Assembly (NCBI RefSeq): GCF_032444005.1
Contig: NC_091288.1
Location: 220,720,001 to 220,784,000, forward strand
From: Ranitomeya imitator
Taxonomy: Eukaryota
Direction of reading: 5' to 3'
DNA length: 64,000 nucleotides
Shown here: in pieces, positions 7,501 through 41,706 of the stretch
Layout of the letters: every line of letters starts with the position of its first letter
Numbering within the stretch: the first letter of the stretch is position 1
Notes under the pieces: generated by a model
What the model saw: the letters and a program-made list of their open reading frames with translations, nothing else
What the model was told of the DNA's origin: nothing
Database searches by the model: none
Program-made: the position numbers and the translations under genes

Positions 7501-9259
7501 GTCGATGAGGTTCATCAGACGATAGTCGGGAGTAATCTGATTTCGGGGACACTGCGTCCTGCACTCGGGGCAGAGGTAACCATATGGGTGTGGGGTGCTC
7601 CAGTGTGTGGTAATACAGTTTCGGCAGAAGGTGTGCCCGCAGGCGATGGACACCGGATTCTGCAGGTCATCAAGGCACACTGAGCAGGTGATGTCCTCGG
7701 CTAGGACCTGGAAGCCAACGGCACCATCTGAAGGTAGCGGGGGGTCATTACTGAAGAAAACAGAGCACCAATTCAGCTCGAGTCACAACAGGCAGTTGGC
7801 TACACCGTTACGCAGGTGATCGAGCGGGACAGGGCGGCTATGCCAGCGATCGTGTGGGGAAAAGGGGCTACGCCAGCGATCGAGCTGGGCAGGCGGGCTA
7901 CGCCAGTGATTGAGCGGGGCAGGGGGCTACACCAGTGACCGAGAGGGGCATCGCCAGCAATCGAGCGGGACAGGATGGTTATGCCAGCGATGGAGCGGTT
8001 TTTCCCAGGGATGGAGCAGGACAGGGCGGAAACGCCAACGATCGAGCAGGACAGGGCGGATATGCCAGTGATCAAGTGGGACAGGGCGGTTATGGCAGCG
8101 ATCGAGTGGCTTTTCCCAGCGATGGAGAGAGACAGGGCAGCTACGCCAACAACGGAGCGGGACAGGGTGGCTTTCCCCAGCGACGTAGTGGCAGAGACAC
8201 GGTGAATACATCCATCATGGAGCATGAGAAGGCAACTATGCTGGCGATGGAGTGGGATAGCGGAACTATGCAGGGCATGGAGCAGGGCAGTGCAGCTATG
8301 CTGGTAGCAGCAAAAGGCAGTGCGGCTATGCTGGCAACGGAGCAGAAGAGTGCACCGTCTTAGGTGACAGAGCAGGGCAGGGCAGTGCAGCTATGCTGAC
8401 GGCAGAGAAGGGCACTGTGGCTATGCTGGCGGCATTGTGGCTATGCTGGCGGCATTGTGGCTATGCTGGCGGGATTGTGGCTATGCTGGCGGGATTGTGG
8501 CTATGCTGGCGGCATTGTGGCTATGCTGGTGGCATTGTGGCTATGCTGGCGGCATTGTGGCTATGCTGGCTGCATTGTGGCTATGCTGGCGGCATTGTGG
8601 CTATGCTGGCAGCATTGTGGCTATTCTGGCGGTGGAGCAGAAGAGTGCACCATCTCAGGTGGCAGGGCAGTGCAGCTATGCTGGCGGCATTGTGGATATG
8701 TTGGTGGTGGAGCAGAAGAGTGCACCGTCTCAGGCGGCAGGGCAGTGCAGCTATGCTGACAGCATTGTGGCTATGCTGGCGGTGGAGCAGAAGAGTGCAC
8801 CGTCTCAGGCGGCAGGGCAGTGCAGCTATGCTGGCGGCATTGTGGCTATACTGGCGGTGGAGCAGAAGAGTGCACCGTCTCAGGTGGCAGGGCAGTGCAG
8901 CTATGCTGGCGGCATTGTGGCTATGCTGGCGGTGGAGCAGAAGAGTGCACCGTCTCAGGTGGCAGGGCAGTGCAGCTATGCTGGCGGCATTGTGGCTATG
9001 CTGGCGGCGGAGATGACGATACTCTCCTACCACCCGGACTGCATATTTCAGGGTGTCTGTCCTCTCCGTCTCCGGTGTACGGACTGTCACTGTGGTCACC
9101 GGCCTCTCACCTCACAGTCTCGGCGCTCTCGCTGGGTCTGTCCGCTCGCTCTCTCCGTGGCCTCCTTCTCACCCTCTTCCTCTGGGGCTCAGTCTGTGGC
9201 TGCGCCGGCCTCAGTGAGGTTTGCGGCCTCTCTGCCCCCCTGTGCCTCCTGGCCTCCAT
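1179..9259 (-). CDS. rnf112: RNF112/neurolastin-like RING E3 ligase-GTPase, copy A (13 exons, ~616 aa, intact)
   Basis: Exons (minus strand, all GT-AG and phase-consistent): 9259-9111, 7750-7462, 7386-7174, 6810-6673, 6572-6468, 6382-6332, 4981-4937, 4787-4701, 4423-4300, 3945-3815, 2614-2561, 1809-1735, 1568-1179. Sum is 1851 nt = 617 codons including stop. RING CSVC..CGHTFC..C..CPEC; G1 GEKRRGKS; G2 STTKGIWIW; G3 DTEG; G4 IRDW; LLPHPG; DMDEDF. Domain order matches RNF112. The symbol denotes family; orthology is not established. Exon 1 is the least certain exon. Confidence 0.88.
2760..3690. repeat. 33-bp C-rich minisatellite in copy A intron 10
   Basis: Unit CAGCCCTGCCCCTCAGCCACACCCCTGCTGACA repeated ~25-28 times, degenerate at the edges. 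Confidence 0.9.
5383..5625 (-). mobile_element. CR1-type LINE 3' end fragment (copy A intron 6)
   Basis: Minus strand decodes, with an indel, to RKGFFTV-AVRLWN..PQEVVMADTITAF...DDVL, followed by a CR1-like 3' UTR (..cttgatggac....tctcaacctatgtaa). Confidence 0.7.
7174..7386 (-). CDS. rnf112: Copy A exon 3: GTPase P-loop
   Basis: VQLVWTD...LCVIGEKRRGKSFLMNYILRAL; ttctacAG acceptor, CAG|GTGAGA donor. Confidence 0.9.
7462..7750 (-). CDS. rnf112: Copy A exon 2: C3HC4 RING finger
   Basis: EDITCSVCLDDLQNPVSIACGHTFCRNCITTHWSTPHPYGYLCPECR; acceptor ttttcttcAG (phase 2), donor CAG|GTAACA. Confidence 0.9.
7810..8175. repeat. 30-bp minisatellite in copy A intron 1
   Basis: Unit ~GAGCGGGACAGGGCGGCTATGCCAGCGATC, ~11 degenerate copies. 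Confidence 0.8.
8230..9010. repeat. 20-bp and 75-bp composite minisatellite in copy A intron 1
   Basis: GGCATTGTGGCTATGCTGGC x~11, plus 75-bp units that embed the same 20-mer. Confidence 0.9.
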
Positions 9260-9571
9260 GTTGTTTATGTGCTGCCTCCAGTGCCCGCTCCTCCCTTCTC
9301 CTCTGCAGCTGTTGTTCCTGTTCCTCGCTACACCCCGCCTGCTGATGCAGCAGAGCTGAGCGGCTCCTCTCACTGTTTCAGTTGTGGAATCTGAACCTTT
9401 CTGCGCAGTCTGGAGACAATAATAAGGAACATGATGAAATCCTCACAAGATGTCCGGACCGTGGCGGGAGCTCTGCGCCTTGGATGGCGCTCAGTGTGTA
9501 TGGAAGCAATTAGTGAATTTAATCGTGCCCAATCGTGGAGTGAAAAGTTCTGTAACTTTCGAGCAGACTTT

Positions 9572-10296
9572 GGGGCCCATTCATTATTGCATTTGCTCCT
9601 TTTTTTTTGTAGCTTTTGCTGTTTTCCGCCTGTTTTTCATTAGCGCTCTGTTCTTTTTTTATTCTGTGCCTCTTTTATAGTCGATGATCTTCGTGCTCGG
9701 CGGCTGTTTTCGATGTTCGCCGTTGGGGTCGGGTTTGGGGTTTCCAGAACTTCGCAGCTGATTGATCAATTGCGAATTATTAAAAAGTCAGAAAAGTTTT
9801 GCAGTTTGCGAATTATGTGACATTTTAGAAGAACGCGTCATGTTGAGCCAAACCATTACGCTAGTGATCACAGGCGAAGCGCACGGAGCATTGGCGGTTT
9901 TTGTCACTTTGTTGTCTGGTGGTTCTCACTGATGAGTCTTTGGAAAATTTATCACAATGGCGCAGACGGCTCCGGAACTCGAGGACTTTACAGAAACATT
10001 TTGTAACTTTTTGAAAAGTCACAATGTCGAAATGATAAAACAAAAAAAACACAAAAACACAGCCAAAGACATAAAATAGAAATAAAAAAGGTACAAGCAA
10101 ATTATTTTGGTGCAAAAAAAGCTACAAAACAGGCAAACACTGATGGAAACGCGAAGATGAATCGGCGCAGGAAGCTTTTCTCATTTTGCGTAAAAAAATA
10201 TCAAACTGGAGCGAAACTTTGAAGAATTTTGGCGCAAAAATGTGAAAACGGTTCATAGGGCAGAAAAGGGACGAAACAAAAATGATGAATCGGCCT
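9572..10296. mobile_element. Degenerate non-autonomous DNA transposon (T2/Kolobok-like MITE)
   Basis: Imperfect terminal inverted repeats GGGGCCCATTCATTATT / AATGATGAATCGGCCT; T-rich left half and A-rich right half. Confidence 0.4.
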
Positions 10297-10477
10297 TTAG
10301 TGTTTTGATCCTTCGGTTTCAAGGTCTCTGATTGCTGTCAGTGAATAATAATGTAGATCTCAGCTGTGCACTCCACAGCGCCTTGGTCCCTCACTCTTGG
10401 CCATGACAGTTTGAAAAGCCAATTATTTGGTGCACAGTGAATCCCCTTCATTGTCTTCTACATCAGCTCATTTTTAA

Positions 10478-10805
10478 AGGGAACCTGTCACCTGAATTTG
10501 GCGGGACTGGTTTTGGGTCATATGGGTGGAGTTTTCGGATGTTTGATTCACCCTTTCCTTACCCGCTGGCTACATGCTGGCTGCAATATTGGATTGAAGT
10601 TCATTCTCTGTCCTCCATAGTACACGCCTGCGCAAAGCAATCTTGCCTTGTACAGGCGTGTACTATGGAGGACAGAGAATGAACTTCAATCCAATATTGC
10701 AGCCAGCATGCAGCCAGCGGGTAAGGAAAGGGTGAATCAAACACCCGAAAACTCCGCCCATATGACCCAAGACCAGTCCCGCCAAATTCAGGTGACAGAG
10801 TCCCT
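10478..10805. mobile_element. T2/Kolobok-type palindromic MITE with TTAA target-site duplication
   Basis: 328 bp near-perfect inverted repeat (AGGGAACCTGTCACCTGAATTTGGCGGGACTGG...CCAGTCCCGCCAAATTCAGGTGACAGAGTCCCT); TTAA at 10474-10477 and 10806-10809. Confidence 0.92.
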
Positions 10806-11077
10806 TTAAGATCTCTGCTTGCTGTCGATCAGTGAATTATGTCTTATGGCGGACTTCACATTGTTATACTGCCACCTGCTGCTGCCATTGAGTATTGCAA
10901 CTGAAAAGGCAGATGGAGACATAGTGACACACAACAAACTGCAGCTCTGCATTAGTACTAAACCATATCTATCCCACAATGCACTGCATAATTATTCATC
11001 ATTCAACAAAGTCATTAAATACAAATATGTATGTGATATCTGATATCTGACAACAAGGAGGGGAATAAGACTGTAGT

Positions 11078-14000
11078 CATGTATCTCTGTATACAGGGAG
11101 CTCCCCCCAGTGGTGGCTGCAGACAGGATCTTATCATGTATCTCTGTATACAGGGAGCTCCCCCTAGTGGTGGCTGCAGACAGGATCTTATCATGTATCT
11201 CTGTATACAGGGAGCTCCCCCTAGTGGTGTCTGCAGACAGGATCTTATCATGTATCTCTGTATACAGGGAGCTCCCCCTAGTGGTGGCTGCAGACAGGAT
11301 CTTATCATGTATCTCTGTATACAGGGAGCTCCCCCTAGTGGTGACTGCAGACAGGATATTATGTATCTCTGTATACAGGGAGCTCCCCCCAGTGGTGGCT
11401 GCAGACAGGATCTTATCATGTATCTCTGTATACAGGGAGCTCCTCCTAGTGGTGGCTGCAGACAGGATCTTATCATGTATCTCTGTATACAGGGAGCTCC
11501 CCCTAGTGGTGGCTGCAGACAGGATCTTATCGTGTATCTCTGTATACAGGGAGCTCCCCCTAGTGGTGGCTGCAGACAGGATCTTATCGTGTATCTCTGT
11601 ATACAGGGAGCTCCCCCTAGTGGTGGCTGCAGACAGAATCTTATCATGTATCTCTGTATACAGGGAGCTCCCCCTAGTGGTGGCTGCAGACAGGATCTTA
11701 TCGTGTATCTCTGTATACAGGGAGCTCCCCCTAGTGGTGGCTGCAGACAGGATCTTATCGTGTATCTCTGTATACAGGGAGCTCCCCCTAGTGGTGGCTG
11801 CAGACAGGATCTTATCATGTATCTCTATATACAGGGAGCTCCTCCTAGTGGTGGCTGCAGACAGGATCTTATCATGTATCTCTGTATACAGGGAGCTCCC
11901 CCTAGTGGTGGCTGCAGACAGGATCTTATCATGTATCTCTGTATACAGGGAGCTCCCCCTAGTGATGGCTGCAGACAGGATCTTATCATGTATCTCTGTA
12001 TACAGGGAGCTCCCCCTAGTGGTGGCTGCAGACAGGATCTTATCATGTATCTCTGTATACAGGGAGCTCCCCCTAGTGGTGACCGCAGACAGAATCTTAT
12101 CATGTATCTCTGTATACAGGGAGCTCCCCCTAGTGGTGACTGCAGACAGGATCTTATCATGTATCTATGTACACAGGGAGCTCCCCCTAGTGGTGGCTGC
12201 AGACAGGATCTTATCATGTATCTCTGTATACAGGGAGCTCCCCCTAGTGGTGACTGCAGACAGGATATTATGTATCTCTGTATACAGGGAGCTCCCCCCA
12301 GTGGTGGCTGCAGACAGGATCTTATCATGTATCTCTGTATACAGGGAGCTCCCCCTAGTGGTGGCTGCAGACAGGATCTTATCATGTATCTCTATATACA
12401 GGGAGCTCCTCCTAGTGGTGACTGCAGACAGAATCTTATCATGTATCTCTGTATACAGGGAGCTCCCCCTAGTGGTGACTGCAGACAGGATCTTATCATG
12501 TATCTCTGTATACAGGGAGCTCCCCCTAGTGGTGACTGTAGACAGGATCTTATCATGTGTCTCTGTTTACAGGGAGCTCCCCCTAGTGGTGACTGCAGAC
12601 AGGATCTTATCATGTATCTCTGTATACAGGGAGCTCCCCCTAGTGGTGACTGTAGACAGGATCTTATCATGTATCTCTGTATACAGGGAGCTCCCCCCAG
12701 TGGTGGCTGCAGACAGGATCTTATCATGTATCTCTGTATACAGGGAGCTCCCCCTAGTGGTGGCTGCAGACAGAATCTTATCATGTATCTCTGTTTACAG
12801 GGAGCTCCCCCTAGTGGTGACTGCAGACAGGATCTTATCATGTATCTCTGTATACAGGGAGCTCCCCCTAGTGGTGACTGCAGACAGGATCTTATCATGT
12901 ATCTCTGTATACAGGGAGCTCCCCCTAGTGGTGACTGTAGACAGGATCTTATCATGTATCTCTGTATACAGGGAGCTCCCCCTAGTGGTGACTGCAGACA
13001 GGATCTTATCATGTATCTCTGTATACAGGGAGCTCCCCCTAGTGGTGACTGCAGACAGGATCTTATCATGTATCTCTGTATACAGGGAGCTCCCCCTAGT
13101 GGTGACTGTAGACAGGATCTTATCATGTATCTCTGTATACAGGGAGCTCCCCCTAGTGGTGACTGCAGACAGGATCTTATCATGTATCTCTGTATACAGG
13201 GAGCTCCCCCTAGTGGTGACTGCAGACAGGATCTTATCATGTATCTCTGTATACAGGGAGCTCCCCCTAGTGGTGACTGCAGACAGGATCTTATCATGTA
13301 TCTCTATATACAGGGAGCTCCCCCTAGTGGTGGCTGCAGACAGGATCTTATCATGTATCTCTGTATACAGGGAGCTCCCCCTAGTGGTGACTGCAGACAG
13401 GATCTTATCATGTATCTCTGTATACAGGGAGCTCCCCCTAGTGGTGACTGCAGACAGGATCTTATCATGTATCTCTGTATACAGGGAGCTCCCCCTAGTG
13501 GTGACTGTAGACAGGATCTTATCATGTATCTCTGTATACAGGGAGCTCCCCCTAGTGGTGACTGCAGACAGGATCTTATAATGTATCTCTGTATACAGGG
13601 AGCTCCCCCTAGTGGTGACTGCAGACAGGATCTTATCATGTATCTCTATATACAGGGAGCTCCCCCTAGTGGTGGCTGCAGACAGGATCTTATCATGTAT
13701 CTCTGTATACAGGGAGCTCCTCCTAGTGGTGACTGCAGACAGGATCCTATCATGTATCTCTGTACACAGGGAGCTCCCCCTAGTGGTGGCTGCAGACAGG
13801 ATCTTATCATGTATCTCTATATACAGGGAGCTCCCCCTAGTGGTGGCTGCAGACAGGATCTTATCATGTATCTCTGTATACAGGGAGCTCCCCCTAGTGG
13901 TGGCTGCAGACAGGATCTTATCATGTATCTCTGTATACAGGGAGCTCCCCCTAGTGGTGGCTGCAGACAGGATCTTATCATGTATCTCTGTACGCAGGGA

Positions 14001-17000
14001 GCTCCCCCTAGTGGTGGCTGCAGACAGGATCTTATGTATCTCTGTATACAGGAAGCTCCCCCTAGTGGTGGCTGCAGACAGGATCTTATCATACATCTAT
14101 GTACACAGGGAGCTCCCCCTAGTGGTGGCTGCAGACGGGATCTTATCATGTATCTCCGTATACAGGGAGCTCCCCCTAGTGGTGGCTGCAGACAGGATCT
14201 TATCTTGTATCTCTGTATACAGGGAGTTCCCCCTAGTGTGGGCTGCAGACAGGATCTTATCATGTATCTCTGTATACAGGGAGCTCCCCCTAGTGGTGGC
14301 TGCATACAGGATCTTATCATGTATCTCTGTATACAGGGAGCTCCCCCTAGTGGTGGCTGCAGACAGGATATTATCATGTATCTCTGTATACAGGGAGCTC
14401 CCCCTAGTGGTGGCTGCAGACGGGATCTTATCATGTATCTCTGTATACAGGGAGTTCCCCCTAGTGGTGACTGCAGACAGGATCTTATCATCTATCTCTG
14501 TATACAGGGAGCTCCCCCTAGTGGTGACTGCAGACAGGATATTATCATGTATCTCTGTATACAGGGAGTTCCCCCTAGTGGTGGCTGCAGACAGGATCTT
14601 ATCATGTATCTCTGTATACAGGGAGCTCCCCCTAGTGGTGGCTGCATACAGGATCTTATCATGTATCTCTGTATACAGGGAGCTCCCCCTAGTGGTGGCT
14701 GCAGACAGGATATTATCATGTATCTCTGTATACAGGGAGCTCCCCCTAGTGGTGGCTGCATACAGGATCTTATCATGTATCTCTGTATACAGGGAGCTCC
14801 CCCTAGTGGTGGCTGCAGACAGGATATTATCATGTATCTCTGTATACAGGGAGCTCCCCCTAGTGGTGGCTGCAGACAGGATCTTATCATCTATCTCTGT
14901 ATACAGGGAGCTCCCCCTAGTGGTGACTGCAGACAGGATGTTATCATGTATCTCTGTATACAGGGAGCTCCCCCTAGTGGTGACTGCAGACAGGATCTTA
15001 TCATGTATCTCTGTACGCAGGGAGCTCCCCCTAGTGGTGACTGCAGACAGGATCTTATCATGTATCTCTGTATACAGGGAGCTCCCCCTAGTGGTGGCTG
15101 CAGACAGGATCTTATCATTTATCTCTGTATACAGGGAGCTCCCCCTAGTGGTGGCTGCAGACAGAATCTTATCATGTATCTCTGTATACAGGGAGCTCCC
15201 CCTAGTGGTGACTGCAGACAGGATCTTATCATGTATCTCTGTACGCAGGGAGCTCCCCCTAGTGGTGACTGCAGACAGGATCTTATCATGTATCTCTGTA
15301 TACAGGGAGCTCCCCCTAGTGGTGGCTGCAGACAGAATCTTATCATGTATCTCTGTACGCAGGGAGCTCCCCCTAGTGGTGACTGCAGACAGGATCTTAT
15401 CATTTATCTCTGTATACAGGGAGCTCCCCCTAGTGGTGGCTGCAGACAGAATCTTATCATGTATCTCTGTATACAGGGAGCTCCCCCTAGTGGTGGCTGC
15501 AGACAGAATCTTATCATGTATCTCTGTATACAGGGGGCTCCCCCTAGTGGTGGCTGCAGACAGGATCTTATCATGTATCTCTATATACAGGGAGCTCCCC
15601 CTAGTGGTGGCTGCAGACAGGATCCTATCATGTATCTCTGTATACAGGGAGCTCCCCCTAGTGGTGGCTGCAGACAGGATCCTATCATGTATCTCTGTAT
15701 ACAGGGAGCTCCCCCTAGTGGTGGCTGCAGACAGGATCTTATCATGTATCTCTGTACACAGGGAGCTCCCCCTAGTGGTGGCTGCAGACAGGATCTTATC
15801 ATGTATCTCTATATACAGGGAGCTCCCCCTAGTGGTGGCTGCAGACAGGATCTTATCATGTATCTCTGTATACAGGGAGCTCCCCCTAGTGGTGGCTGCA
15901 GACAGGATCTTATGTATCTCTGTATACAGGAAGCTCCCCCTAGTGGTGGCTGCAGACAGGATCTTATCATACATCTATGTATACAGGGAGCTCCCCCTAG
16001 TGGTGGCTGCAGACGGGATCTTATCATGTATCTCCGTATACAGGGAGCTCCCCCTAGTGGTGGCTGCAGACAGGATCTTATCTTGTATCTCTGTATACAG
16101 GGAGTTCCCCCTAGTGGTGGCTGCAGACAGAATCTTATCATGTATCTCTGTATACAGGGAGTTCCCCCTAGTGGTGGCTGCAGACAGGATATTATCATGT
16201 ATCTCTGTATACAGGGAGCTCCCCCTAGTGGTGGCTGCAGACAGGATATTATCATGTATCTCTGTATACAGGGAGCTCCCCCTAGTGGTGGCTGCAGACG
16301 GGATCTTATCATGTATCTCTGTATACAGGGAGTTCCCCCTAGTGGTGGCTGCAGACAGGATCTTATCTTGTATCTCTGTATACAGGGAGTTCCCCCTAGT
16401 GGTGGCTGCAGACAGGATCTTATCATGTATCTCTGTATACAGGGAGCTCCCCCTAGTGGTGTCTACAGACAAGATCTTATCATGTATCTCTGTATACAGG
16501 GAGCTCCCCCTAGTGGTGGCTGCAGACAGAATCTTATCTTGTATCTCTGTATACAGGGAGTTCCCCCTAGTGGCGGCTGCAGACAGGATCTTATCATGTA
16601 TCTCTGTATACAGGGAGCTCCCCCTAGTGGTGACTGCAGACAGGATCTTATCATGTATCTCTGTATACAGGGAGTTCCCCCTAGTGGTGGCTGCAGACAG
16701 GATCTTATCATGTATCTCTGTATACAGGGAGTTCCCCCTAGTGGTGGCTGCAGACAGAATCTTATCTTGTATCTCTGTATACAGGGAGTTCCCCCTAGTG
16801 GTGGCTGCAGACGGGATCTTATCATGTATATCTGTATACAGGGAGCTCCCCCTAGTGGTGGCTGCAGACGGGATCTTATCATGTATCTCTGTATACAGGG
16901 AGTTCCCCCTAGTGGTGGCTGCAGACAGGATCTTATCTTGTATCTCTGTATACAGGGAGTTCCCCCTAGTGGTGGCTGCAGACAGAATCTTATCTTGTAT

Positions 17001-18276
17001 CTCTGTATACAGGGAGCTCCCCCTAGTGGTGGCTGCAGACAGGATCTTATCATGTATCTCTGTATACAGGGAGCTCCCACTAGTGGTGGCTGCAGACAGG
17101 ATCTTATCATGTATCTCTGTATACAGGGAGCTCCCCCTAGTGGTGGCTGCAGACGGGATCTTATCATGTATCTCTGTATACAGGGAGCTCCCCCTAGTGG
17201 TGGCTGCAGACAGGATATTATCATGTATCTCTGTATACAGGGAGCTCCCCCTAGTGGTGGCTGCAGACGGGATCTTATCATGTATCTCTGTATACAGGGA
17301 GCTCCCCCTAGTGGTGGCTGCAGACGGGATCTTATCATGTATCTTTATATACAGGGAGCTCCCCCTAGTGGTGGCTGCAGACAGGATCTTATCATGTATC
17401 TCTATATACAGGGAGCTCCCCCTAGTGGTGGCTGCAGACAGGATCTTATCATGTATCTCTGTATACAGGGAGCTCCCCCTAGTGGTGGCTGCAGACAGGA
17501 TATTATCATGTATCTCTGTATACAGGGAGCTCCCCCTAGTGGTGGCTGCAGACGGGATCTTATCATGTATCTCTGTATACAGGGAGCTCCCCCTAGTGGT
17601 GGCTGCAGACGGGATCTTATCATGTATCTTTATATACAGGGAGCTCCCCCTAGTGGTGGCTGCAGACGGGATCTTATCATGTATCTCTATATACAGGGAG
17701 CTCCCCCTAGTGGTGACAGCAGACAGGATGTTATCATGTATCTCTGTATACAGGGAGCTCCCCCTAGTGGTGGCTGCAGACAGGATCTTATCATGTATCT
17801 CTGTATACAGGGAGCTCCCCCTAGTGGTGGCTGCAGACGGGATCTTATCATGTATCTCCGTATACAGGGAGCTCCCCCTAGTGGTGGCTGCAGACAGGAT
17901 CTTATCATGTATCTCTGTACGCAGGGAGCTCCCCCTAGTGGTGACTGCAGACAGGATCTTATCATGTATCTCTATATACAGGGAGCTCCCCCTAGTGGTG
18001 GCTGCAGACGGGATCTTATCATGTATCTCTATATACAGGGAGCTCCCCCTAGTGGTGGCTGCAGACAGGATATTATCATGTATCTCTGTATACAGGGAGC
18101 TCCCCCTAGTGGTGGCTGCAGACAGGATCTTATCATGTATCTCTGTATACAGGGAGCTCCCCCTAGTGGTGGCTGCAGACAGGATCTTATCATGTATCTC
18201 TGTATACAGGGAGCTCCCCCTAGTGGTGGCTGCAGACAGGATCTTATCATGTATCTCTGTACGCAGGGAGCTCCCC
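11078..18276. repeat. 57-bp satellite, block 1 (~126 units), with a CTCF-like motif in each unit
   Basis: Unit ATGTATCTCTGTATACAGGGAGCTCCCCCTAGTGGTGGCTGCAGACAGGATCTTATC; occasional 54-bp variants. Confidence 0.97.
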
Positions 18277-19089
18277 TGTTATGATCTGGTGGTTAGGACA
18301 AATAGTGGACCTGGTATTTAGAGCACCCGTAAAGACCTGATAGCATATTAATACAGGACAAGCTCTTGGAAGTGGAACCTCTGCTGACCGCAATCCCTAA
18401 TCCTATCACGCACACTAGAAATAGCCGTGGAGCGCTCCTATCATGACCTAGGCGCCTCGTCACAGCCTCAGAACTAGCTAGCCCTAGAGATATGAAAAAT
18501 AAGCCTATCTTGCCTCAGAGAAAATTCCCCAAAGGAGAAGGCAGCCCCCCACATATATTGACTGTGAGTAAGATGAAATCACAAACACAGAGATGAAATA
18601 GATTTAGCAAAGAGAGGCCCGACTTACTAAACAGACAGAAGATAGGAAAGGTCACTTTGCAGTCAGCAAAAAACCCTACAAAAGCCACACAGAGAGTGCA
18701 GGGAAAAATACCTTCCGCACCGACTAACGGAGCGGAGGCGCCCCTCTGCGTCCCAGAGATTCCAGCAAGCAAGGCAAAATTCACATAAGCATGCTGGACA
18801 GAAAAAATAGCAAACAAGAAAAAAGCAAAGCAAAACTTAGCTTTTGCTGGAGGAAACAGGTAACCAGGAAGATCCAGGAGCGAACTAGACCAATGCTACA
18901 ACATTGACAGCTGGCATCGGACAAGGATCCAAGTGGAGTTAAATAGAGCAGCCCACTAACGAATTAGCCTCGTCACCTGTAGAAGGAAACTCAGAAACAC
19001 CCACAGGCATCAGAGAAAGTCCATGGACCGAACCAGCCAAAGTACCATTCATGACCACAGGAGGGAGCCCGAAAACAGAAATCACAACA
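18277..19089 (-). mobile_element. Solo LTR (probably Ty3/Gypsy) inserted in the satellite
   Basis: 813 bp, termini TGTTATGAT...ATCACAACA (TG..CA, 8/9 inverted match); flanks CTCCCC/CTCCTC (6-bp duplication, 1 mismatch); TATA-like CTATTTAA on the minus strand near 18945; no coding sequence. Confidence 0.8.
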
Positions 19090-21405
19090 CTCCTCCTAGT
19101 GGTGGCTGCAGACAGGGTCTTGTGTATCTCTGTATACAGGGAGCTCCCCCTAGTGGTGTCTGTGGACAGGATCTTATGTATCTCTGTATACAGGGAGCTC
19201 CCCCTAAGTGGTGTCTGTGGACAGGATCTTATCATGTATCTCTGTATACAGGGAGCTCCCCCTAGTGGTGACTGCAGACAGGATCTTATCATGTATCTCT
19301 GTATACAGGGAGCTCCCCCTAGTGGTGGCTGCAGACAGGATCTTATCATGTATCTCTGTATACAGGGAGCTCCCCCCTAGTGGTGGCTGCAGACAGGATC
19401 TTATCATGTATCTCTGTATACAGGGAGCTCCCCCTAGTGGTGACTGCAGACAGGATCTTATCATGTATCTCGTATACAGGGAGCTCCCCCTAGTGGTGAC
19501 TGCAGACAGGATCTTATCTTGTATCTCTGTATACAGGGAGCTCCCCCTAGTGGTGACTGCAGACAGGATCTTATCATGTATCTCTGTATACAGGGGGCTC
19601 CCCCTAGTGGTGGCTGCAGACAGGATCTTATCATGTATCTCTGTATACAGGGAGCTCCCCCTAGTGGTGACTGCAGACAGTATCTTATCATGTATCTCTG
19701 TATACAGGGAGCTCCCCATAGTGGTGACTGCAGACAGGATCTTATCATGTAACTCTGTATACAGGGAGCTCCCCCTAGTGGTGACTGCAGACAGAATCTT
19801 ATCATGTATCTCTATATACAGGGCGTTTCCCCTAGTGCTGACTGCAGACAGGATATTATCATGTATCCATGTATACAGGGAGCTCCCCCTAGTGGTGGCT
19901 GCAGACAGGATCTTATCATGTATCTCTGTATACAGGGAGCTCCCCCTAGTGGTGACTGCAGACAGGATCTTATCATGTATCTCTATATACAGGGAGCTCC
20001 CCCTAGTGGTGACTGCAGACAGGATCTTATCATGTATCTCTGTATACAGGGAGCTCCCCCTAGTGGTGGCTGCAGACAGGATCTTATCATGTATCTCTGT
20101 ATACAGGGAGCTCCCCCTAGTGGTGGCTGCAGACAGGATCTTATCATGTATCTCTGTATACAGGGGGCTCCCCCTAGTGGTGGCTGCAGACAGGATCTTA
20201 TCATCTATCTCTGTATATAGAGAGCTCCCCCTAGTGGTGACTGCAGACAGGATCTTATGATGTATCTCTGTATACAGGGAGCTCCCCCTAGTGGTGTCTG
20301 CAGACAGGATCTTATCATGTATCTCTGTATACAGGGAGCTCCCCCTAGTGGTGACTGCAGACAGGATCTTATCATGTAACTCTGTATACAGGGAGCTCCC
20401 CCTAGTGGTGGCTGCAGACAGGATCTTATCATCTATCTCTGTATATAGAGAGCTCCCCCTAGTGGTGACTGCAGACAGGATCTTATCATGTATCTCTGTA
20501 TACAGGGAGCTCCCCCTAGTGGTGACTGCAGACAGGATCTTATCATGTATCTCTGTATACAGGGAGCTCCCCCTACAGGTGGCTGCAGACAGGATCTTAT
20601 CATGTATCTCTGTATACAGGGAGCTCCCCCTAGTGGTGGCTGCAGACTGGATCTTATCATGTATCTCTGTATACAGGGAGCTCCCCCTAGTGGGGGCTGC
20701 AGACAGGATCTTATCATGTATCTCTGTATACAGGCAGCTCCCCCTAGTGGTGACTGCAGACAGGGTCTTGTGTATCTCTGTATACAGGGAGCTCCCCCTA
20801 GTGGTGTCTGCAGACAGGATCTTATGTATCTCTGTATACAGGGAGCTCCCCCTAGTGGTGACTGCAGACGGGATCTTATCATGTATCTCTGTATACAGGG
20901 AGCTCCCCCTAGTGGTGGCTGCAGACGGAATCTTATCATGTATCTCTGTATACAGGGAGCTCCCCCTAGTGGTGACTGCAGACGGGATCTTACCGTGTAT
21001 CTCTGTATACAGGGAGCTCCCCCTAGTGGTGGCTGCAGACGGGATCTTACCGTGTATCTCTGTATACAGGGAGCTCCCCCTAGTGGTGGCTGCAGACGGG
21101 ATCTTACCGTGTATCTCTGTATACAGGGAGCTCCCCCTAGTGGTGGCTGCAGACGGGATATTATCGTGTATCTCTGTATACAGGGAGCTCCCCCTAGTGG
21201 TGGCCGCGGACAGGATCTTATCACGTATCTCTGTATACAGGGAGCTCCCCCTAGTGGTGACTGCAGACTGGATCTTATCACGTATCTCTGTATACAGGGA
21301 GCTCCCCCTAGTGGTGACTGCAGACAGGATCTTATCATGTATCTCTGTATACAGGGAGCTCCCCCTAGTGGTGACTGCAGGCAGGATCTTATGTATCTCT
21401 GTATA
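19090..21405. repeat. 57-bp satellite, block 2 (~40 units)
   Basis: Same unit as block 1, more degenerate, with 1-bp indels. Confidence 0.95.
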
Positions 21406-22124
21406 TAGGAGCCATATAGAGATACATAAGCCAATGTGTAACTGGGTGAATAAGACAGGATTTGGTGCTCTGTATCAGAACACGTATAAACTTTTATTAT
21501 ATAATTTATTAGTACACAAAATAAACAATATTTTAATTTTAAGAAAAATTGTCCGACAGATATTATTGTTTTTAACATTCAATTGATACAAAATTGTCAA
21601 CAACCTATAAATCATATATGTTATCGTTTTCTCTATCAATATTTAGTTTTATTTACTGCAAGTTTAATAAATTAATGAAAATCTCTTGGAGTCACAGACG
21701 CGATATCTGGAATTACACGGTACACGGACCGCCAATGCTGGATGTGTTCCAGACGTCTGGGAATCCTGAGAAAATCTCACCCCATAGGGGACAAGTGACA
21801 GCAGCGCAGGATCACGCCCCAATAATGAGAATGGAAGACGTGGGAACATCTGAGCGGGCGCTCCGCCGGCCCTGACCTCGCTCATCATGATGGGCGTCCT
21901 GTTACTCCTCTATGAAAGTCTTATCTGTTTAGCGCCCCCTAGAGGACACAGATCCAGTGCATCCTATTCAGTCATATCGGAAGATCTGCTTTGGTCTCCT
22001 AAGAACATGAAATGGCCTCAACGGTCCAGAAAAGCTAATGAAGACATCACTCTACAATCTTGATGGTAGTTGCCACTTTTTTGGGCTTATGTCTCCTTTG
22101 GGGTCTGATGATGGCGGTCACTCT

Positions 22125-22628
22125 TCACTCCGCTTTGGGCACCAGCTTTTGGGTGTCTTCAGGCGTTGAACCATTGCTATTACCTTGGTCATCGGGCATC
22201 TGATCCTTCTTCTTCGCTATATGCCCAATAATCCCCCCCACACCTCCTCCAACTCCTGTCCCAATAGCCCCTCCGACGGACCCTCCGACCGCCCCGCCGA
22301 TTATCACCGCCTCCGTAGCCAGGACTGTTCCAGCCACGGCTGCTCCCACGATTCCTCCCGCCAAGCTGAGGATCCCTCCACCCACCGCACACCCGATCCC
22401 CACCGCGCACTTTGTGAAGCGCTTGGAGTATTCGGAGCAGAATTTCTCCACTTCTTGGTCCAGTAGAGCCTTCATCTCGCAGATGAGATTTTTCCTCGCG
22501 GTGTCATTGCTGCCCCTCAGATTCTGCTCGTACTCCTGAAGGAGCCGCAAGGCCTCCTCGCTGACCACCTCCCTCATATTGGAGGGCCTGACCTTCAGCA
22601 CCTTGATAGGAGAAGACGAGCTGGGAGC
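22125..22628 (-). CDS. rnf112: Copy B terminal exon: Gly-zipper membrane hairpin and acidic tail
   Basis: AVGIGCAVGGGILSLAGGIVGAAVAGTVLATEAVIIGGAVGGSVGGAIGTGVGGGVGGIIG...EDTQKLVPKAE*. Confidence 0.9.
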   Translation of the reverse strand, partial: APSSSSPIKVLKVRPSNMREVVSEEALRLLQEYEQNLRGSNDTARKNLICEMKALLDQEVEKFCSEYSKRFTKCAVGIGCAVGGGILSLAGGIVGAAVAGTVLATEAVIIGGAVGGSVGGAIGTGVGGGVGGIIGHIAKKKDQMPDDQGNSNGSTPEDTQKLVPKAE

Positions 22629-25600
22629 CTGAGGAGGACACGAGAAGAGAAGTTACAGTTCATGGTCTATGACCACAGCCTGAGAAACATGCCGCCATAC
22701 CCGCTAGCTCCGGATACAGAACATATCCCCCCAGGACGAGCGCTCTTACCTTATTTGTAACAAAATCCTGGAATATTTTCACCGTGATCTTCAAGTTTTT
22801 GTGGTTTTCAAGGGCATAGAACATCTGGAGGAAGAGATCGAGGAGTTAATGTGGTGACCGAAGACGAGGAGACTCATCCCATCCTGTATGTCAGATACCG
22901 GGGGGCGAGAGCTCATAACTGAGGATAAACGATACGACCATGGGAAGATGGACGGGAATCATCTTATGTGTCAGACTGGATCTTATGCTTCTTGGAATGT
23001 TTCAGAAATATGTATCCTGAGTGTTTCCTGTATGTGAATGACTCGGGACTGGACACCGGGGAGAGCCGGGCCCCCGACGGCCACGAGTCATGCAGATTAG
23101 GGGGTCACCTTGATTTTGTGGATTGTAACACGCTGCCTCTAGTGGACAATATAGGATATGACACCATTACCTCTATAGGGGAAGCAAAGCTGAAGTTTTC
23201 TTGCTGCAAAGTACTGACGAAATCCTGAAAAATAAACACAGGAGAGAGAAGGGTTAACAAAAGAAAAGACATATATGTAATAAAACATACAGTGGCCGAG
23301 AAGGTAAAACCTGCTGATTGCCCGATCCTCCATGTCGGCAGGATCACGGCGACTCCAAAACTGCTCAGTTTATTTTTTTTATTTAGGTGATAAAAAAAAC
23401 ATTTGGACTCCGTATCTACATTTTGCATTTTCTTCCTGATCACTTTTAGTCCTTTATTGCCCGTGATAACCCGCTGTGCGGGGAGAAGAGGACTCGGTTA
23501 CTCTGATGAGAGTAGAGTTTTTTTTTTTTATAATTGAGGGGGAGGCATTAACATTGTCAAAGATGTGCGCTATCATTGATTCCGGGGTGCCATGTGTGCC
23601 TTGCCCGGGTTCCGGTAGCCCAGAATATGCCGCTATCCTTTCTTTTCCTGTTTTTTAGATCCTGGCCGGGTCTTCTCCTCGCTGCGCCGTCTGCTCTCGG
23701 CATTAAAGCCTCCTCTTCACCTAATCTTTAGTCCTGACACCCGTCGCTCATATTATTCCTCTTTCTGCATCCAGTAAAAAGGGTATTGATGCCACATCAC
23801 GACCCCATGTAGCACCTGAGCCATCTAATGCCCCTCTTAAAGGGATTTGTAACAGAAAAGTCAGGGTTCCTCCCACCACGCCATCATTAGTGGATAATAA
23901 GGGGGAATTTTGGACCACATTTCTTAACCGTAATGGGTTTTATCAATTTACAAGACATGATGTGTGAGGAGACTCTACGCCGACAGGTCCATAGTGCGGG
24001 CGCCCTAAAGTCGCAGAAAACGCCATATACCGACCCGAGAATCGCCAGCAGAACACTTATTAACATTTCATGCCCAACCTTCAGCATTCGGCCCAGCTGG
24101 CCACACGTGATCCTCTCTCCATGGACATCGGTTTTACGGTGGAGCCAAACTTCCTCCACGAGGTTGGAGATGTATGTGGTCAGGTGGCTCCTGAAATCAT
24201 CGTCCATGTCTGTGAAGAGACGCAATAATCATCACACTGGAATATACACGTATATCCTACCGGAAATTAACGGGTGGGAGCAGTCCCAGCGTCTATTTCT
24301 CCCCCCTCCCGCTTGCATCTGGCTGTTTGTGACGGATGGAGGGCATAGGATGGCGCCCATATAACGGTGGAGCAATATTTCCATTGATGGTTTCCCTCAT
24401 GGCTCCATGTGATCAGTCTGTAGAGGACAGTCCCTCTAATTCACGGCTTACCTGATTGCCGCCCTTCACTGGATCTCAGGAAGGTTTTCCCCGGGTGAGG
24501 CAGGAGGAAGCCGCTCGCGGACGGACTGCGCAGAGTCTCCAGCACACGGCGGTATGTCGCGCTCTTCCGCAGCTTCTACAACAAGACAAAGTGCAACTTT
24601 CCATCTCCAGTGTCAGGTTCGTACACCTCCCGGGATGGCCGATACCCACCCAAGACTTTATTCTCGCAGTCATGTGTTGGAGACTTGTAGCGCCCCGAGC
24701 GTGATCAAAGTTTGGTGAAAAAACGTCAAAATACAGAACAATGCAGTTTGTAAACGGCAGCAGCAAAAACATCTTCAACAATTGGTGACCATTAACAATA
24801 AAAGACATTTTGGAAATCGTGATAATCTGCAATTCGGCACAAATGTTGGCCCCGTTGTTGCCACCACAGCCGGACAGTCCTAGATTACTATCAGAACTCT
24901 GTCGTACCTCCGTCTCGTGCTCCATGTAGGACTTCGCCGCGTCTCGACCACAGTCGTCGGGGTTATGCCAATCACGAACCAGAATATTCAGGTGCTAAAA
25001 TGTAGAAGACAAAAAAATGGAGAGATGCAACCATTGGGAGATGCAGGATGTCAAAGGATGATGGGGACACCAGGTATCTGCTCTGCTCCTAATTTTCAGG
25101 CACGGTGACTCCTTTGGTTGTCCATTGCTTGCTACTGGGGCTCTGGTGGAGAGGACAATACTCAACCTCACAATGGCTGACCTTAGCCGTGGTCCTTCAT
25201 CTACACATCACCAGAGTGGACATAGGAGATGCCACAAGCTCGACCAGAAATGACGGCTACAGTAAGGTGCCAATAAGTTGTGGTCATGATTTTGGGAAAT
25301 AGCTGCAGACTTTGACATCAGATCAATGAGGTCATCAAGATGTCAGGAATGAACACTATCAAAAACTGCACTCTAGAGATCCTGCAAAACTTTCCCTAGA
25401 GGAACGGTAAGAATGAGTGGCGAGCGACTGACAGAGGAGATCACCTGTAGATATTGTAGACAGAAGGATTCCCCTGTGAGCTCCGACACGTGGAGATACA
25501 TCTGAAAAGACACAAATACATCTCGATCGATCCAGTCCATCACCGTAGAAATGAAACTCAAGGTTACATGGGCAGAAGCATCTTCATTCCACTGATACAT

Positions 25601-28308
25601 TGTAGTGACACAATGTAACGATGGTCCATGATACATTCAAGGACTGACGTCATGGAGAATAACACAACTGATGCTTGAAGAGATGTCCTCGACTTCCGTA
25701 CCTCCAGATAATCCAGCTCTGTTGTTTTCAAGCTTGCATTAATGTTGAAGATCTGAGGACACAAACAAACGTTACATCAGGAGATGTTCATGAAGAGGAT
25801 GGACGCCCCACACCCTCCACCATCCAGCACCAAGACGTCACACAAAATTACATCAACCCCCACTAGAGAGACTGAGTCACACAAATATAGCAATCCTGAC
25901 ATGGACGGTGGGCTACATCAATATCTAGGGGGTCTATACAAACTGCATAGTGCAGCCACTCTTACCTTTTATGTGGTTTGATTACCAGCGATTAGTGTGC
26001 CAAAACAAAACTTTATATTGTGGTCATACATGTGTATCCCAAACCCCAAAATAGCAAGGTTTGATGGAGTAAAGAGGTGAGTGGGCATGTATATTCAGAG
26101 CTCCTCGAAGACCTCACATACCAGGTAGGAGCTGAGGAGCATGGACAAGGCGGACAGCTTCACACAGGTCTCCCTATCACTTTCGATGTCCAATGAACCC
26201 TCTGTGTCCAGGACAAACACGGCCATCTGTACAGAGGAGAAAGAAGGGTAACATCATAACCAAGGACCATGGCGTCGGCTGGGAAAGTGCTTCTGTAAAT
26301 GACATGACGGGGTAGCTACAATAAGATCTGACATTCATCCATTATTAACAGAGATCCAAGATGGAAGCGATAATCGTTATATTGATCTTACCGGCGGCTC
26401 ACAATAGAGTACGGGGAGAGACCTGATGAGAGACATACAACGTGTCCTTTACCTTTTCGCCGTTCCTCTCTAGGATAAAGGGTCTATTCCACAACCATAT
26501 CCCTTTAGTGATACTGTCTGTCCCGGATCGCCACTCAAAACCATGGAGGGGCTCGTCCTGTTCCCCTAGGCTGATCGGCTGCCCCTTCTCCTACACAGGA
26601 AAAAAAGCTAAATTTATCAAATCATAAGGAAACTATTTTCTCAATAGCAAGGATGGATCTCCATCAATAACAGATCTCTAAATGCAAGCCCCCCTCCCAG
26701 GGTAAGCATGTGCAGAACTCCTCTATAAGAACATTACAATGGTAACTTTGGGTTGGAGCAGATACAAGCATGACGCCCCTCTAACTCTTGACTTGAGGGG
26801 CGATGATATGAACCCATTTGGTCTCCTGTGACATTGGATTTTGCAGGTTATGACTACTCACCAGGCTGTAGAGTGCTCTCAGAATATAGTTCATCAGGCT
26901 GGACTTTCCTCTTCTCTTCTCTCCGATCACGCAGATAAGACACAGGGGGTAATCTGAGATCTTACTGTCCAAAAAGCATCCATCAAGAACAGATTCATCC
27001 AGCCCCATTTTGTTGCTTGCATCGGTATAGACCAGCTGGACGGCACGTGGAGGAGCCTGGGAGGACATTAGTCATATTCAATAATGATGGAGAAAAGCAG
27101 ATCATTGCATCTCATATCTATGAAGTAGACTGAAAAGAACGCCTAATGGTCTGCCATCTGTGATTAACCACAGGCTCCCCCTCCACCATATCAAATGAAC
27201 TTCCATCTAAAACATTGTCACCGGTGGTATTAACTGAAGACTGGCATGGCCCAAGTACCCATGGCGTTCCCTACTATTCTCTAATAACCCAAATGATACA
27301 ACAAAGGCATGGGGCCATAATAAAGGTCTGTGCCATACATCTTTATGAACGTGTGGACTTTGTACCAGATATAACCAAGTGTTTCTCTGTATTTGGCATT
27401 AAATTATCATCATTTTAAAAGCTCTAAAAACTCACTTACCTACTAGTTTGGATTGTTATTTGTTGACAGCTAGCTAAACCATTGGTATGAATTTTCAGGT
27501 ATTGCAACCAACTCTGTGTGTGAACAGTGGCATGGTTGAAATACCCATGGCGGTCCCTAGAGTTTTTTAATAAGCCACATAATACTCTTATCTGCGTTAT
27601 GATAAGTTAACACAAGTCTGTGCTGTAAATCTCATCAATGTGTAGACTTTGTACACGCTATAACCATTATTACTCAGCGTTTATCATTAAGGTATAGAAG
27701 GGCACACATGCTACAGACCGTGCAAGTTTCTTTCATACTTTCACCTACCAGTTTGGACTGTTCTTCTTTGACAACCAGCTGAACCTTTGACACCAGTTGC
27801 TGCAGGCGGTAGGCAGGTATGAGCTGATCTCTCGGGCAGACTTTCCTGCATTCTGGACAGCGATACCCAAAGGGTTGTGGGGTGGACCAGTAGGATGAGA
27901 TGCAGGGTTTACAAAAAGTGTGTCCGCAGGTGATCGATACCGGGTCATGGATCTCATGGAGACAAATGGAGCATGTGATATCGTCTTTAAGTTTGGAGAA
28001 ATGTGCAGACCCTTCGTTTGGCATGGTCGCCCTAATTCACAGAGATATCAGGAGGGAAGAAAAGGAAAGTTACAAGTCTCATCACATAAATTATGTGAAA
28101 ACAGGGAGTAAAGTGCAAGCAAAGCAGCCGAAAACAGTAACACCAAAGCTGTGACGGAGCATAGATCAGATGATGCACAGGAAAGTACAAACATGGACGA
28201 CAATGTGTGATAACTGGTCACATGACCCTGGAATAAAAGGATCCAAAGACTATAAACACGATGTGAAAAGTAAAGGATGACTTACGGCTTAGAGCGGCTG
28301 CTTCCCAT
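22125..28308 (-). CDS. rnf112: RNF112/neurolastin-like RING E3 ligase-GTPase, copy B (13 exons, ~608 aa, intact)
   Basis: Exons (minus strand, GT-AG, phase-consistent): 28308-28286, 28031-27749, 27056-26862, 26590-26453, 26226-26122, 25752-25702, 25501-25445, 24994-24908, 24575-24452, 24209-24079, 23224-23171, 22824-22750, 22628-22125. Sum is 1827 nt = 609 codons. RING; GEKRRGKS; SITKGIWLW; DTEG; VRDW; Gly/Ala-rich membrane hairpin at the C-terminus typical of RNF112. Intron positions and phases match copy A. Confidence 0.92.
26862..27056 (-). CDS. rnf112: Copy B exon 3: GTPase P-loop
   Basis: AVQLVYTD...LICVIGEKRRGKSSLMNYILRAL. Confidence 0.9.
27749..28031 (-). CDS. rnf112: Copy B exon 2: C3HC4 RING finger
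   Basis: DDITCSICLHEIHDPVSITCGHTFCKPCISSYWSTPQPFGYRCPECR. Confidence 0.92.
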
Positions 28309-28544
28309 GGGGTGAGTGCAGGGCGCCCCGATATCTATGGAGCCTGCGGGACAGAGGTCAATGACTGAAACAGGTAGGAGGAGAAAAAGCAAACACATCA
28401 CACATGGAAACGCCCTGACGGAGTTAACCCCTAAGCTACTGACACCGCGCAGAAAAAGGAGAACAGGAAGATCAACAGCCACAGGCCATGACTGCACAGT
28501 GTGTACATGCCACCACCCCAATATCTATATTAGGTCCATAGACC

Positions 28545-29850
28545 ACCGTATCTCCACTATATCCATACATTGTACACCCCCATTATATCCACACACTGTA
28601 CACCCCCCATTATATCCATACACTGTACAGCCCCCATTATATCCATACACTGTACAACCCCCCACTATATCCATACACTGTACAGCCCCCATTATATCCA
28701 TACACTGTACAGCCCCCCACTATATCCATACATTGTACAGCCCCCATTATATCCATACACTGTACAGCCCCCCACTATATCCATACACTGTACAGCCCCC
28801 CACTATATCCATACACTGTACAGCCCCCATTATATCCATACACTGTACAGCCCCCCCATTATATCCATACACTGTACAGCCCCCATTATATCCATACACT
28901 GTACACCCCCCCATTATATCCATACACTGTACAGCCCCCCCATTATATCCATACACTGTACAGCCCCCCATTATATCCATTCACTGTACAGCCCCCCATT
29001 ATATCCATACACTGTACAGCCCCCCATTATATCCATACACTGTACAGCCCCCCCATTATATCCATACACTGTACAGCCCCCCATTATATCCATACACTGT
29101 ACAGCCCCCCATTATATCCATACACTGTACAGCCCCCCCATTATATCCATACACTGTACAGCCCCCCATTATATCCATACACTGTACAGCCCCCCCATTA
29201 TATCCATACACTGTAAAGCCCCCCATTATATCCATTCACTGTACAGCCCCCCACTATATCCATTCACTGTACAGCCCCCCACTATATCCATACACTGTAC
29301 AGCCCCCCACTATATCCATACACTGTACAGCCCCCCACTATATCCATACACTGTACAGCCCCCCATTATATCCATACACTGTACAGCCCCCATTATATCC
29401 ATACACTGTACAGCCCCCCATTATATCCATTCACTGTACAGCCCACCATTATATCCATACACTGCACAGCCCCCCATTATATCCATACACTGCACAGCCC
29501 CCCATTATATCCATACACTGTACACCCCCTATTATATCCATACACTGTACACCCCCCATTATATCCATACACTGTACAGCCCCCATTATATCCATACACT
29601 GTACAGCCCCCCACTATATCCATACACTGTACAGCCCATTATATCCATACACTGTACAGCCCCCCACTATATCCATACACTGTACAGCCCCCCATTATAT
29701 CCATACACTGTACACCCCCCATTATATCCATACACTGTACACCCCCCATTATATCCATACACTGTACACCCCCCATTATATCCATACACTGTACACCCCC
29801 CCATTATATCCATACACTGTACACCCCCCCACTATATCCATACACTGTAC
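28545..29850. repeat. 28-30-bp minisatellite upstream of copy B
   Basis: Unit CCATTATATCCATACACTGTACAGCCCC with a variable C-run. Confidence 0.95.
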
Positions 29851-30154
29851 ATGTTCTATATCTTCACAAAAGCTACAAACATGACCAGAAATGTATAACA
29901 ATGCTTTATTATTACAGCTACACATACGATATACAGGATAACAGAGGTGACATCAACAAGAATAATCCCAGAGAAGGTAGAAAGGACGGAAATCCTGCAC
30001 CGATGACGACCAAGAAGAGGAACAACGCAGCGGACTGCGGGGACACGAAGGTGGAGGAGTCAAGGAGCAGCAGAAAGGGTTAGAAAAATCATCTCACAAG
30101 AACTGACCGCAGCATAGAATAAGCAGGACGCACAGTGTGCGTTACCGCCAAGCA

Positions 30155-41560: not shown

Positions 41561-41706
41561 AGTGGTAGTGGTCCCTTATCTCTTGGGCCCCTGTGCAGTG
41601 GCACAGTGTCTGCTGCTTGTGCTGTGCAGTGACTGAGCCCCGTGCCCGTCCTATATGTATTGCCATAAATACACCGCCACTTAGTGGCCGGGTCTGATGT
41701 AGAAAC

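Follow-up and report, generated by a model that had tools for sequence, protein, structure and literature searches.

Tandem RNF112 paralogues of the frog Ranitomeya imitator begin with unrelated first exons that carry different predicted targeting signals

Two RNF112 paralogues at one locus

We analysed a stretch of 64,000 nt from the genome of Ranitomeya imitator (assembly GCF_032444005.1, contig NC_091288.1, positions 220,720,001 to 220,784,000 of the forward strand), referred to here as the window, whose own numbering is used throughout. It holds two minus-strand paralogues of RNF112, a gene for a ubiquitin ligase that remodels membranes, also called ZNF179 or neurolastin. The two copies, A and B, lie approximately 19 kb apart, with B upstream and A downstream, and no third RNF112 copy was found within the 64-kb window. 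Both have the same architecture, in which a RING domain is followed by an atlastin-like GTPase and, at the C-terminus, by a hydrophobic anchor. Their first exons are real coding exons that are unrelated to each other and that end at the same phase-2 intron position in front of the RING exon. The family itself is known, and the annotations of other frogs already include homologous gene models with both types of start.

Searches were run exon by exon. A profile of both RING exons was compared with 1.84 billion representative proteins, and the full-length matches then served as queries in word searches restricted to N-terminal regions; it is from these profile and word searches that we identify the genes as RNF112. 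The RING exons match PF15227 (zf-C3HC4_4) with E-values of 4e-14 (A) and 4e-11 (B), and the P-loop exons of both copies encode GEKRRGKS(F/S)LMN. On the P-loop exon, PF02263 (GBP) scored below its gathering score when this single exon was scanned (E 0.002); the same family is present in full-length orthologues that are 73-88% identical to the window exons and that match the xlRNF112 and atlastin structures. Between A and B the RING exons are about 50% identical, and the two copies are colinear across about 13 exons. The exons of copy A are about 73% identical to a Bufo gargarizans protein and to a cluster of frog transcripts from Logan, and about 72% identical to a Dendropsophus protein. Those of copy B are 85-88% identical to "RNF112-like" proteins of Dendrobates tinctorius and Phyllobates terribilis, and "RNF112-like" is the NCBI label for the sister anuran clade that holds copy B. 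Both genes appear to be intact, judging by their tblastn coverage.

The first exon of gene A

Exon 1 of gene A (9111-9329, minus strand) consists of a coding part of 49 codons plus 2 nt (9259-9111) and a 5' untranslated region (UTR) of at least 70 nt (9329-9260). The ATG at 9259 stands in the context aacaacATGg and opens a frame of 149 nt that reaches 9111, where the donor reads GAG/GTGAGA. The acceptor (...ttcttcag/T) lies at 7750, and the joined AG and T complete a Ser codon in phase 2. In the RING exon of A (7462-7750, minus strand; zf-C3HC4_4) no ATG precedes the RING in frame, so the gene must have a coding exon further upstream. As candidates for such an exon, we scored all segments upstream of either RING exon that are open from an ATG and end in phase 2 at a GT. 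Among the 64 that lie in 7751-11000, exon 1 of A was the sole strong candidate, with a donor of 9.9 bits against 6.4 bits for the runner-up.

RNA contigs from four runs, each belonging to a different study, were placed on positions 6300-10900, which cover the region of gene A only. The runs had been found with positions 6300-9400 and contain about one third of the words of this segment, approximately its exon share. The junction between 9111 and 7750 is present in spliced contigs of all four runs; it skips 1360 nt bounded by CT..AC on the plus strand, that is, GT..AG on the minus strand. Upstream of the junction the contigs cover 9111 up to 9212-9329, and on the other side they continue past 7750, through the RING exon and four more GT..AG introns. 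Depth inside the introns of gene A is zero in the four runs, hence the contigs at this gene are spliced RNA. The initial annotation had predicted that this junction would be transcribed, and four independent studies now bear this out. Between 9431 and 9259 there is no ATG, so the ATG at 9259 is the first ATG of the longest contig.

The coding part of the exon behaves as a coding sequence. Each of its three variant sites (9161, 9197 and 9200) is, by our count, a synonymous change at the third position of a codon. Two mRNA contigs from another frog (L003 and L004) have the same A-type start, and in their alignment to exon 1 of A the coding sequence shows gaps of 6 nt only, i.e., multiples of three.

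The rest of the gene can be followed across the lower part of the window. Intron 1 (7751-9110, minus strand; 1360 nt, GT..AG) is mostly made of 20/30/75-bp tandem repeats detected with Tandem Repeats Finder. Exons 3-6 (6333-7386, minus strand, with the individual exons at 7386-7174, 6810-6673, 6572-6468 and 6382-~6333) are separated by GT..AG introns, with their joints seen in the four runs, and encode the beginning of the GBP/atlastin-type GTPase domain, P-loop included. The remainder (1179-6332, minus strand) comprises about 7 exons, and tblastn of anuran orthologues spans residues ~47-614.

Two repeats were observed in or next to this gene. A tandem repeat of 33/66 bp, rich in GC (2787-3742), occupies and adjoins a downstream exon region close to the exon at 3719-3952 and gives rise to long repeat-derived open reading frames (ORFs) on both strands. 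Upstream of A, positions 10470-10810 hold an inverted-repeat element resembling a miniature inverted-repeat transposable element, at which the summed depth of the RNA contigs is in the thousands with many loose ends. This is a high-copy transcribed repeat that lies outside the gene A transcript.

The first exon of gene B

The coding part of exon 1 of gene B (28286-28308, minus strand) is far shorter and encodes MGSSRSK plus 2 nt of a Pro codon. Its ATG at 28308 stands in the context caccccATGg, the codons ATG GGA occupy 28308-28303, and the 23 nt end at 28286 with the donor GCC/GTAAGT. The acceptor (...gaattag/G) lies at 28031, where CC and G join to complete the Pro codon, again in phase 2. 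When the minus strand was re-read, the coordinates that the initial annotation had given for the exons, donors and acceptors of both genes all proved exact, and so did the phase-2 acceptors that it had placed at 7750 and 28031. The two acceptors are 2 residues apart when the RING exons are aligned, which makes this a homologous intron position. The 49- and 7-codon products of the first exons have no similarity to each other, and orthologues carry both starts; the first exons are thus unrelated, as had been proposed.

The predicted intron 1 of B (28032-28285, minus strand) measures 254 nt and runs from GTAAGT to AG. The RING exon that follows (27749-28031, minus strand; zf-C3HC4_4) is 93% identical to those of Phyllobates and Dendrobates, and an alternative in-frame ATG is found at 28024-28022, seven bases into this exon. 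About 11 further exons make up the remainder of the gene (22125-27748, minus strand), where tblastn of the Phyllobates and Dendrobates proteins (P0198 and P0195) spans residues 9-608.

Taken by itself, the 23-nt exon is unremarkable: with a donor of 5.1 bits it ranks 3rd-4th of 311 candidates. What makes it convincing is its conservation across species, and that alone. At the corresponding locus of Eleutherodactylus coqui (L001), 22 of the 23 nt are identical, the donor is kept and the one change (GGA/GGG) is synonymous, whereas the flanking UTR and intron have diverged; gene A is absent within 10 kb downstream of B at this locus. One Logan contig of 2.1 kb (L002), from another frog, represents a spliced mRNA of the B type; its ORF begins at the Met-Gly (MG) start and is preceded by a UTR of 70 nt. 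In two B orthologues (P0164 and P0187) there is no downstream Met, which leaves the ATG of the MG start as the sole start annotated in frame ahead of the RING.

Further upstream, another ATG (28396-28398, minus strand) lies in frame with the ATG of B, in a weak context and within the same open frame. Close to it, a 20-nt element, AGGGGTTAACTCCGTCAGGG (28413-28432, minus strand), is identical in E. coqui and lies there at the same distance of about 105 nt from the ATG. It occurs once in the window and is absent from A, and we regard it as a candidate promoter element or part of the 5' UTR. A 28-bp satellite of about 47 copies (28554-29851) begins approximately 245 bp upstream of the start codon of B, so near to it that the promoter region of B is either very short or includes the satellite.

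N-termini of A-type and B-type proteins

Both starts recur in related proteins. Ten anuran A-type orthologues share an ME.RR start and a PQRK(R/K)xKRRPRRE cluster; they include Xenopus tropicalis, X. laevis, Bombina, Hyperolius, Mantella, Bufo, Dendropsophus and Gastrophryne, as well as a bullfrog-type transcript contig that is identical here to the Aquarana model. In gene A of the window this basic cluster, PQRKRVRRRPRRER (9146-9187, minus strand), occupies residues 25-38. The residues that flank it vary freely, and the Arg/Lys cluster (PQRKRxKRRPRRER) is the sole well-conserved feature of the exon. The closest A-type orthologues read on as ...VSNDPPLP over the predicted junction. No Pfam family matched the N-terminal exons of either gene, and the A exon around the cluster is of low complexity.

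The B-type start reads MG(N/S)xx(S/T/N)K(P), followed by ..MP(Q/N)EG. Proteins of Dendrobates, Phyllobates and Eleutherodactylus start with MGSSRSKP, identical to window B, and up to the RING Dendrobates differs from it by one residue. Besides the anuran B orthologues, salamanders and turtles have an MGxxx(S/T/N)K start, as do many squamates and the coelacanth Latimeria; in the tuatara the motif is present behind an annotated upstream extension. In total, an MG-type start was seen in 61 of the 145 family proteins with RING and P-loop that we collected. The PROSITE pattern for N-myristoylation, PS00008, is G-{EDRKHPFYW}-x(2)-[STAGCN]-{P}, with a small residue at position 6 and Lys or Arg favoured at position 7. 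Window B fits it, in agreement with the earlier claim that its start matches the N-myristoylation consensus, and so do 49 of the 61 MG-starting relatives. All of the 38 distinct MG-type N-termini have Gly2, and 27 of them have Lys7.

As a side observation, among the Bombina bombina models (P0153, P0200 and P0007) NCBI assigns an A-type and a B-type protein to a single "RNF112" gene as its isoforms, and one model of 1353 aa resembles a fusion of tandem copies. Tandem RNF112 paralogues have probably been merged in some frog annotations.

Duplication history

We built a tree from the RING-to-C-terminus part of the proteins only, with the N-terminal trait columns excluded, Latimeria as the outgroup and a quick search. 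The genes of the window were represented by stand-ins, namely Dendrobates and Phyllobates for B, and Bufo, Dendropsophus and Logan contigs for A, and these nearest orthologues are placed within the two anuran RNF112 clades. Anuran RNF112 sequences form one clade (Shimodaira-Hasegawa-like approximate likelihood ratio test, SH-aLRT, 100), which splits into an A clade (SH-aLRT 100) and a B clade (88-99). A topology with A outside B and the other tetrapods is rejected, being 125 log-likelihood units worse (approximately unbiased, AU, test, p 3e-60). Given that Bombina, pipids and neobatrachians are present in each of the two sister clades, the A/B duplication is placed in stem Anura. The stem branch of A (0.45-0.49) is longer than that of B (0.14-0.30).

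The MG start is found in the coelacanth, in salamanders and in amniotes; it is therefore ancestral by parsimony, and the basic exon of A is a later replacement. By this distribution, B is the copy that retains the ancestral first exon of RNF112 (Met-Gly-x-x-x-(Ser/Thr/Asn)-Lys), and the basic exon of A, as judged from tree and taxa, arose once, after the tandem duplication in stem anurans, replacing the MG exon. No relic of an MG-type exon was found upstream of A among the ATG/phase-2 candidates. The initial annotation had spoken of first-exon swapping. The part of this idea that stands is that the exon of A was replaced; the event was neither local nor recent, with an ancestral MG exon and a basic exon that dates to the anuran stem. 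An exchange of first exons between the copies in this genome is ruled out by the tree and the taxon distribution.

C-terminal anchors

The two paralogues also differ at the other end of the protein. The ORF of the last exon of B (22125-22601) encodes two Gly/Ala-rich hydrophobic segments and an acidic tail, a layout common to the RNF112 of salamanders, amniotes and the coelacanth. In the last-exon ORF of A (1179-1544) there is one hydrophobic segment and an amphipathic ...GFSALVARFFR tail. A-type proteins generally share this arrangement, their amphipathic end reading ...LLKTG..A..GRFFR. Besides exon 1, therefore, A appears from these ORFs to have remodelled its C-terminal anchor. The initial annotation had suggested that first-exon swapping may have sent the same RING-GTPase core to different compartments. 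Considering the difference between the anchors, this picture is too simple.

Predicted targeting and alternative explanations

Taken together, the explanation that we regard as probable on the whole is that of two RNF112 paralogues, in which B keeps the ancestral start with its predicted myristoylation, and A gained a basic exon together with a remodelled anchor. For B, we consider it likely, with good confidence, that the protein is N-myristoylated on Gly2. The initiator Met would be removed and Gly2 would be myristoylated by N-myristoyltransferase. The myristate could then provide a second membrane contact at the RING end, comparable to the "myristate plus basic" contact of Src. A has Glu2 and so cannot be myristoylated. 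Its cluster PQRKRVRRRPRRER contains RKRV/KRVR, a core of the classical nuclear localisation signal (NLS) of the form K-K/R-X-K/R, and since the cluster is also conserved in the ten anuran orthologues, its earlier description as NLS-like was apt. Whether it works as such is the least certain step of our proposal: of the roles considered, we favour importin-dependent nuclear or nucleolar import, though at somewhat less than even chances. If so, the two frog copies would divide between them membrane and nuclear roles that in mammals have both been attributed to one gene.

Several points weigh against this explanation, and they have to be considered along with its rivals. An NLS suits a membrane-anchored A less easily than does a role of the cluster in polybasic membrane binding or in Arg-based retrieval to the endoplasmic reticulum (ER). 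The basic exon could then be a polybasic membrane patch that replaced the lost myristate, or an Arg-based ER retention/retrieval signal of the RXR type, such as RKR. Src-type anchors combine myristate with basic residues, and RXR motifs work on the cytosolic tails of membrane proteins. A retains a C-terminal hydrophobic segment and an amphipathic tail and is hence expected on membranes; the cluster contains RKR, RRR and RXR motifs, with a net charge of about +9 across 14 residues, and the lineage in which the MG exon was lost is also the one in which the basic exon appeared. However, the cluster fits the classical NLS core as well, and mammalian Znf179 has been reported in the nucleus (PMC3878200). 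We think a polybasic or ER-retrieval role of the A exon rather unlikely, though for a membrane-anchored protein it is an alternative to be taken seriously. The tree on which the history of this exon depends was built on orthologue proxies with a quick search, and the clade submitted to the AU test was named after the tree had been seen.

For B, 12 of the 61 MG starts fall outside the strict PROSITE pattern, and the choice of start codon is a further matter. For several frogs, some of the B isoforms modelled by NCBI use the downstream Met as their start (MPNEG...), and models starting with MPNEG, MPREG or MSPEG are found in Bufo, Aquarana, Nanorana, Bombina, Hyla and others. Because of these models, forms of B without myristoylation may coexist with the MG form. 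In addition, the ATG at 28398 could lengthen the N-terminus of B if the transcript starts further upstream; were it transcribed and used, Gly2 would not be N-terminal. B might thus be translated mainly from the ATG at 28024 or at 28398, so that the MG start is rarely exposed and there is no myristoylation in vivo, and the Kozak context of the ATG at 28308, which lacks a purine at -3, would agree with this. Nonetheless, Gly2 and Lys7 are conserved over the sarcopterygian radiation, the first exon is kept at the nucleotide level with a synonymous change only while its flanks diverge, and E. coqui lacks the upstream ATG. Moreover, MG is the first in-frame ATG of the mRNA contig L002, and P0164 and P0187 do without the downstream Met. 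We therefore consider translation mainly from another ATG quite improbable. That both upstream exons are chance combinations of an ORF and a donor outside the genes has next to no probability in our view. Chance does indeed often produce a 23-nt ATG...GT segment with a 5-bit donor, as the rank of the B candidate illustrates; but for A the chance reading is refuted by exon 1 being joined in spliced RNA contigs of four studies, both N-termini are carried by orthologous proteins and mRNA contigs in many species, and the first exon of B is conserved in its nucleotides.

Relation to known systems

Members of the RNF112 family, which are brain-enriched RING E3 ligases of vertebrates and GTPases of the dynamin superfamily, share an N-terminal C3HC4 RING, an atlastin-like GTPase with a GxxxxGKS P-loop, a middle domain and a C-terminal hydrophobic region, and both genes resemble them in this. 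The mammalian protein has been reported at endosomes and mitochondria, and the crystal structures of RNF112 (9JJU-9JJX, 2025) are of the Xenopus laevis protein (PMC12012479). The A-type protein P0152 matches 9JJU over residues 147-545. By this match, the crystallised X. laevis RNF112 is of A-type, and A corresponds to the paralogue named rnf112 in Xenopus annotation. The protein used as the structural model is therefore a derived paralogue, with a basic N-terminus, a single hydrophobic segment and an amphipathic tail, in contrast to B, which keeps the architecture of salamanders, amniotes and the coelacanth.

The start of B also resembles the Src homology 4 (SH4) region. MGSSKSKPK is the myristoylation sequence of avian Src and is routinely used as a transferable tag (PMC2629728). 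MGSSRSKP of B agrees with it in 7 of 8 residues, including Gly2, Ser6 and Lys7, and is one residue off. Unlike Src, B has just two basic residues near its N-terminus and an anchor of its own at the C-terminus, and its lipidation is a prediction. Another comparison is offered by N-myristoylated RING E3 ligases; Koutelou et al., as cited in PMC9285105, are said to have described Neuralized-like 1 as one of them in 2008. B would be similar in that it is a RING ligase with a Gly2 start, which would bring the ligase domain to a membrane. Beyond the RING there is no homology to these ligases, a GTPase and a hydrophobic C-terminus are additional parts of RNF112, and it is by prediction that B would belong among them. 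As for A, the K-R-x-R and R-K-R cores, flanked by Pro and conserved across Anura, are those of a classical NLS, but here the cluster sits on a protein that is predicted to be membrane-anchored, and Arg-rich stretches can also be nucleolar, RNA-binding, lipid-binding or ER-retrieval signals.

In the literature searched, which did not cover the neurolastin papers of Lomash et al., we found neither a link between RNF112/ZNF179 and myristoylation nor a remark that the anuran "rnf112" is a derived paralogue. The N-terminus before the RING is not discussed in the RNF112 literature searched. Human RNF112 presumably carries an internal ...FMGNSGNS... behind an upstream start, and a text search of the literature for the mammalian MGNSGNS found nothing.

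At the level of the genome our result is ordinary, as it consists of two gene models that could be predicted correctly; the functional hypothesis is modest, and we do not describe a new kind of system. Its interest lies in the fact that the membrane attachment of RNF112 is unsettled, so that a Gly2/Lys7 start conserved from the coelacanth to squamates provides a concrete myristoylation hypothesis. Furthermore, the Xenopus protein of the 2025 structures is the faster-evolving anuran paralogue, which lost the MG N-terminus and the second hydrophobic segment, and this derived status has to be considered when conclusions on mammalian RNF112 are drawn from it. A wider view would be that RNF112 is ancestrally an N-myristoylated GTPase/E3 ligase, with a lipid that aids its engagement with endosomal or mitochondrial membranes, and that anurans, having duplicated the gene, made one copy non-lipidated, polybasic and nuclear or otherwise targeted through a new exon 1 and a remodelled C-terminal anchor, thus splitting membrane and nuclear roles. 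In this general form we find the idea doubtful.

Repeats around the genes

Tandem repeats fill much of the window. The space between B and A is taken up by a 57-bp satellite (11077-21409; 10.3 kb, about 180 copies, 89-95% alike) that was delimited with Tandem Repeats Finder. It is open in several frames, which results in long spurious ORFs. On the other side of B, positions 31164-58900 are a patchwork of at least 7 different minisatellites: C-rich 46/58-bp repeats at 31.6-39.4 kb, followed by repeats of 26 bp (40427-41562), 28 bp (44101-45430), 35 bp (45808-49216), 86 bp (49974-54554), 13 bp (54791-55988) and 29 bp (57134-58900). Two runs of N (43178-43310 and 43326-43603) fall within this patchwork.

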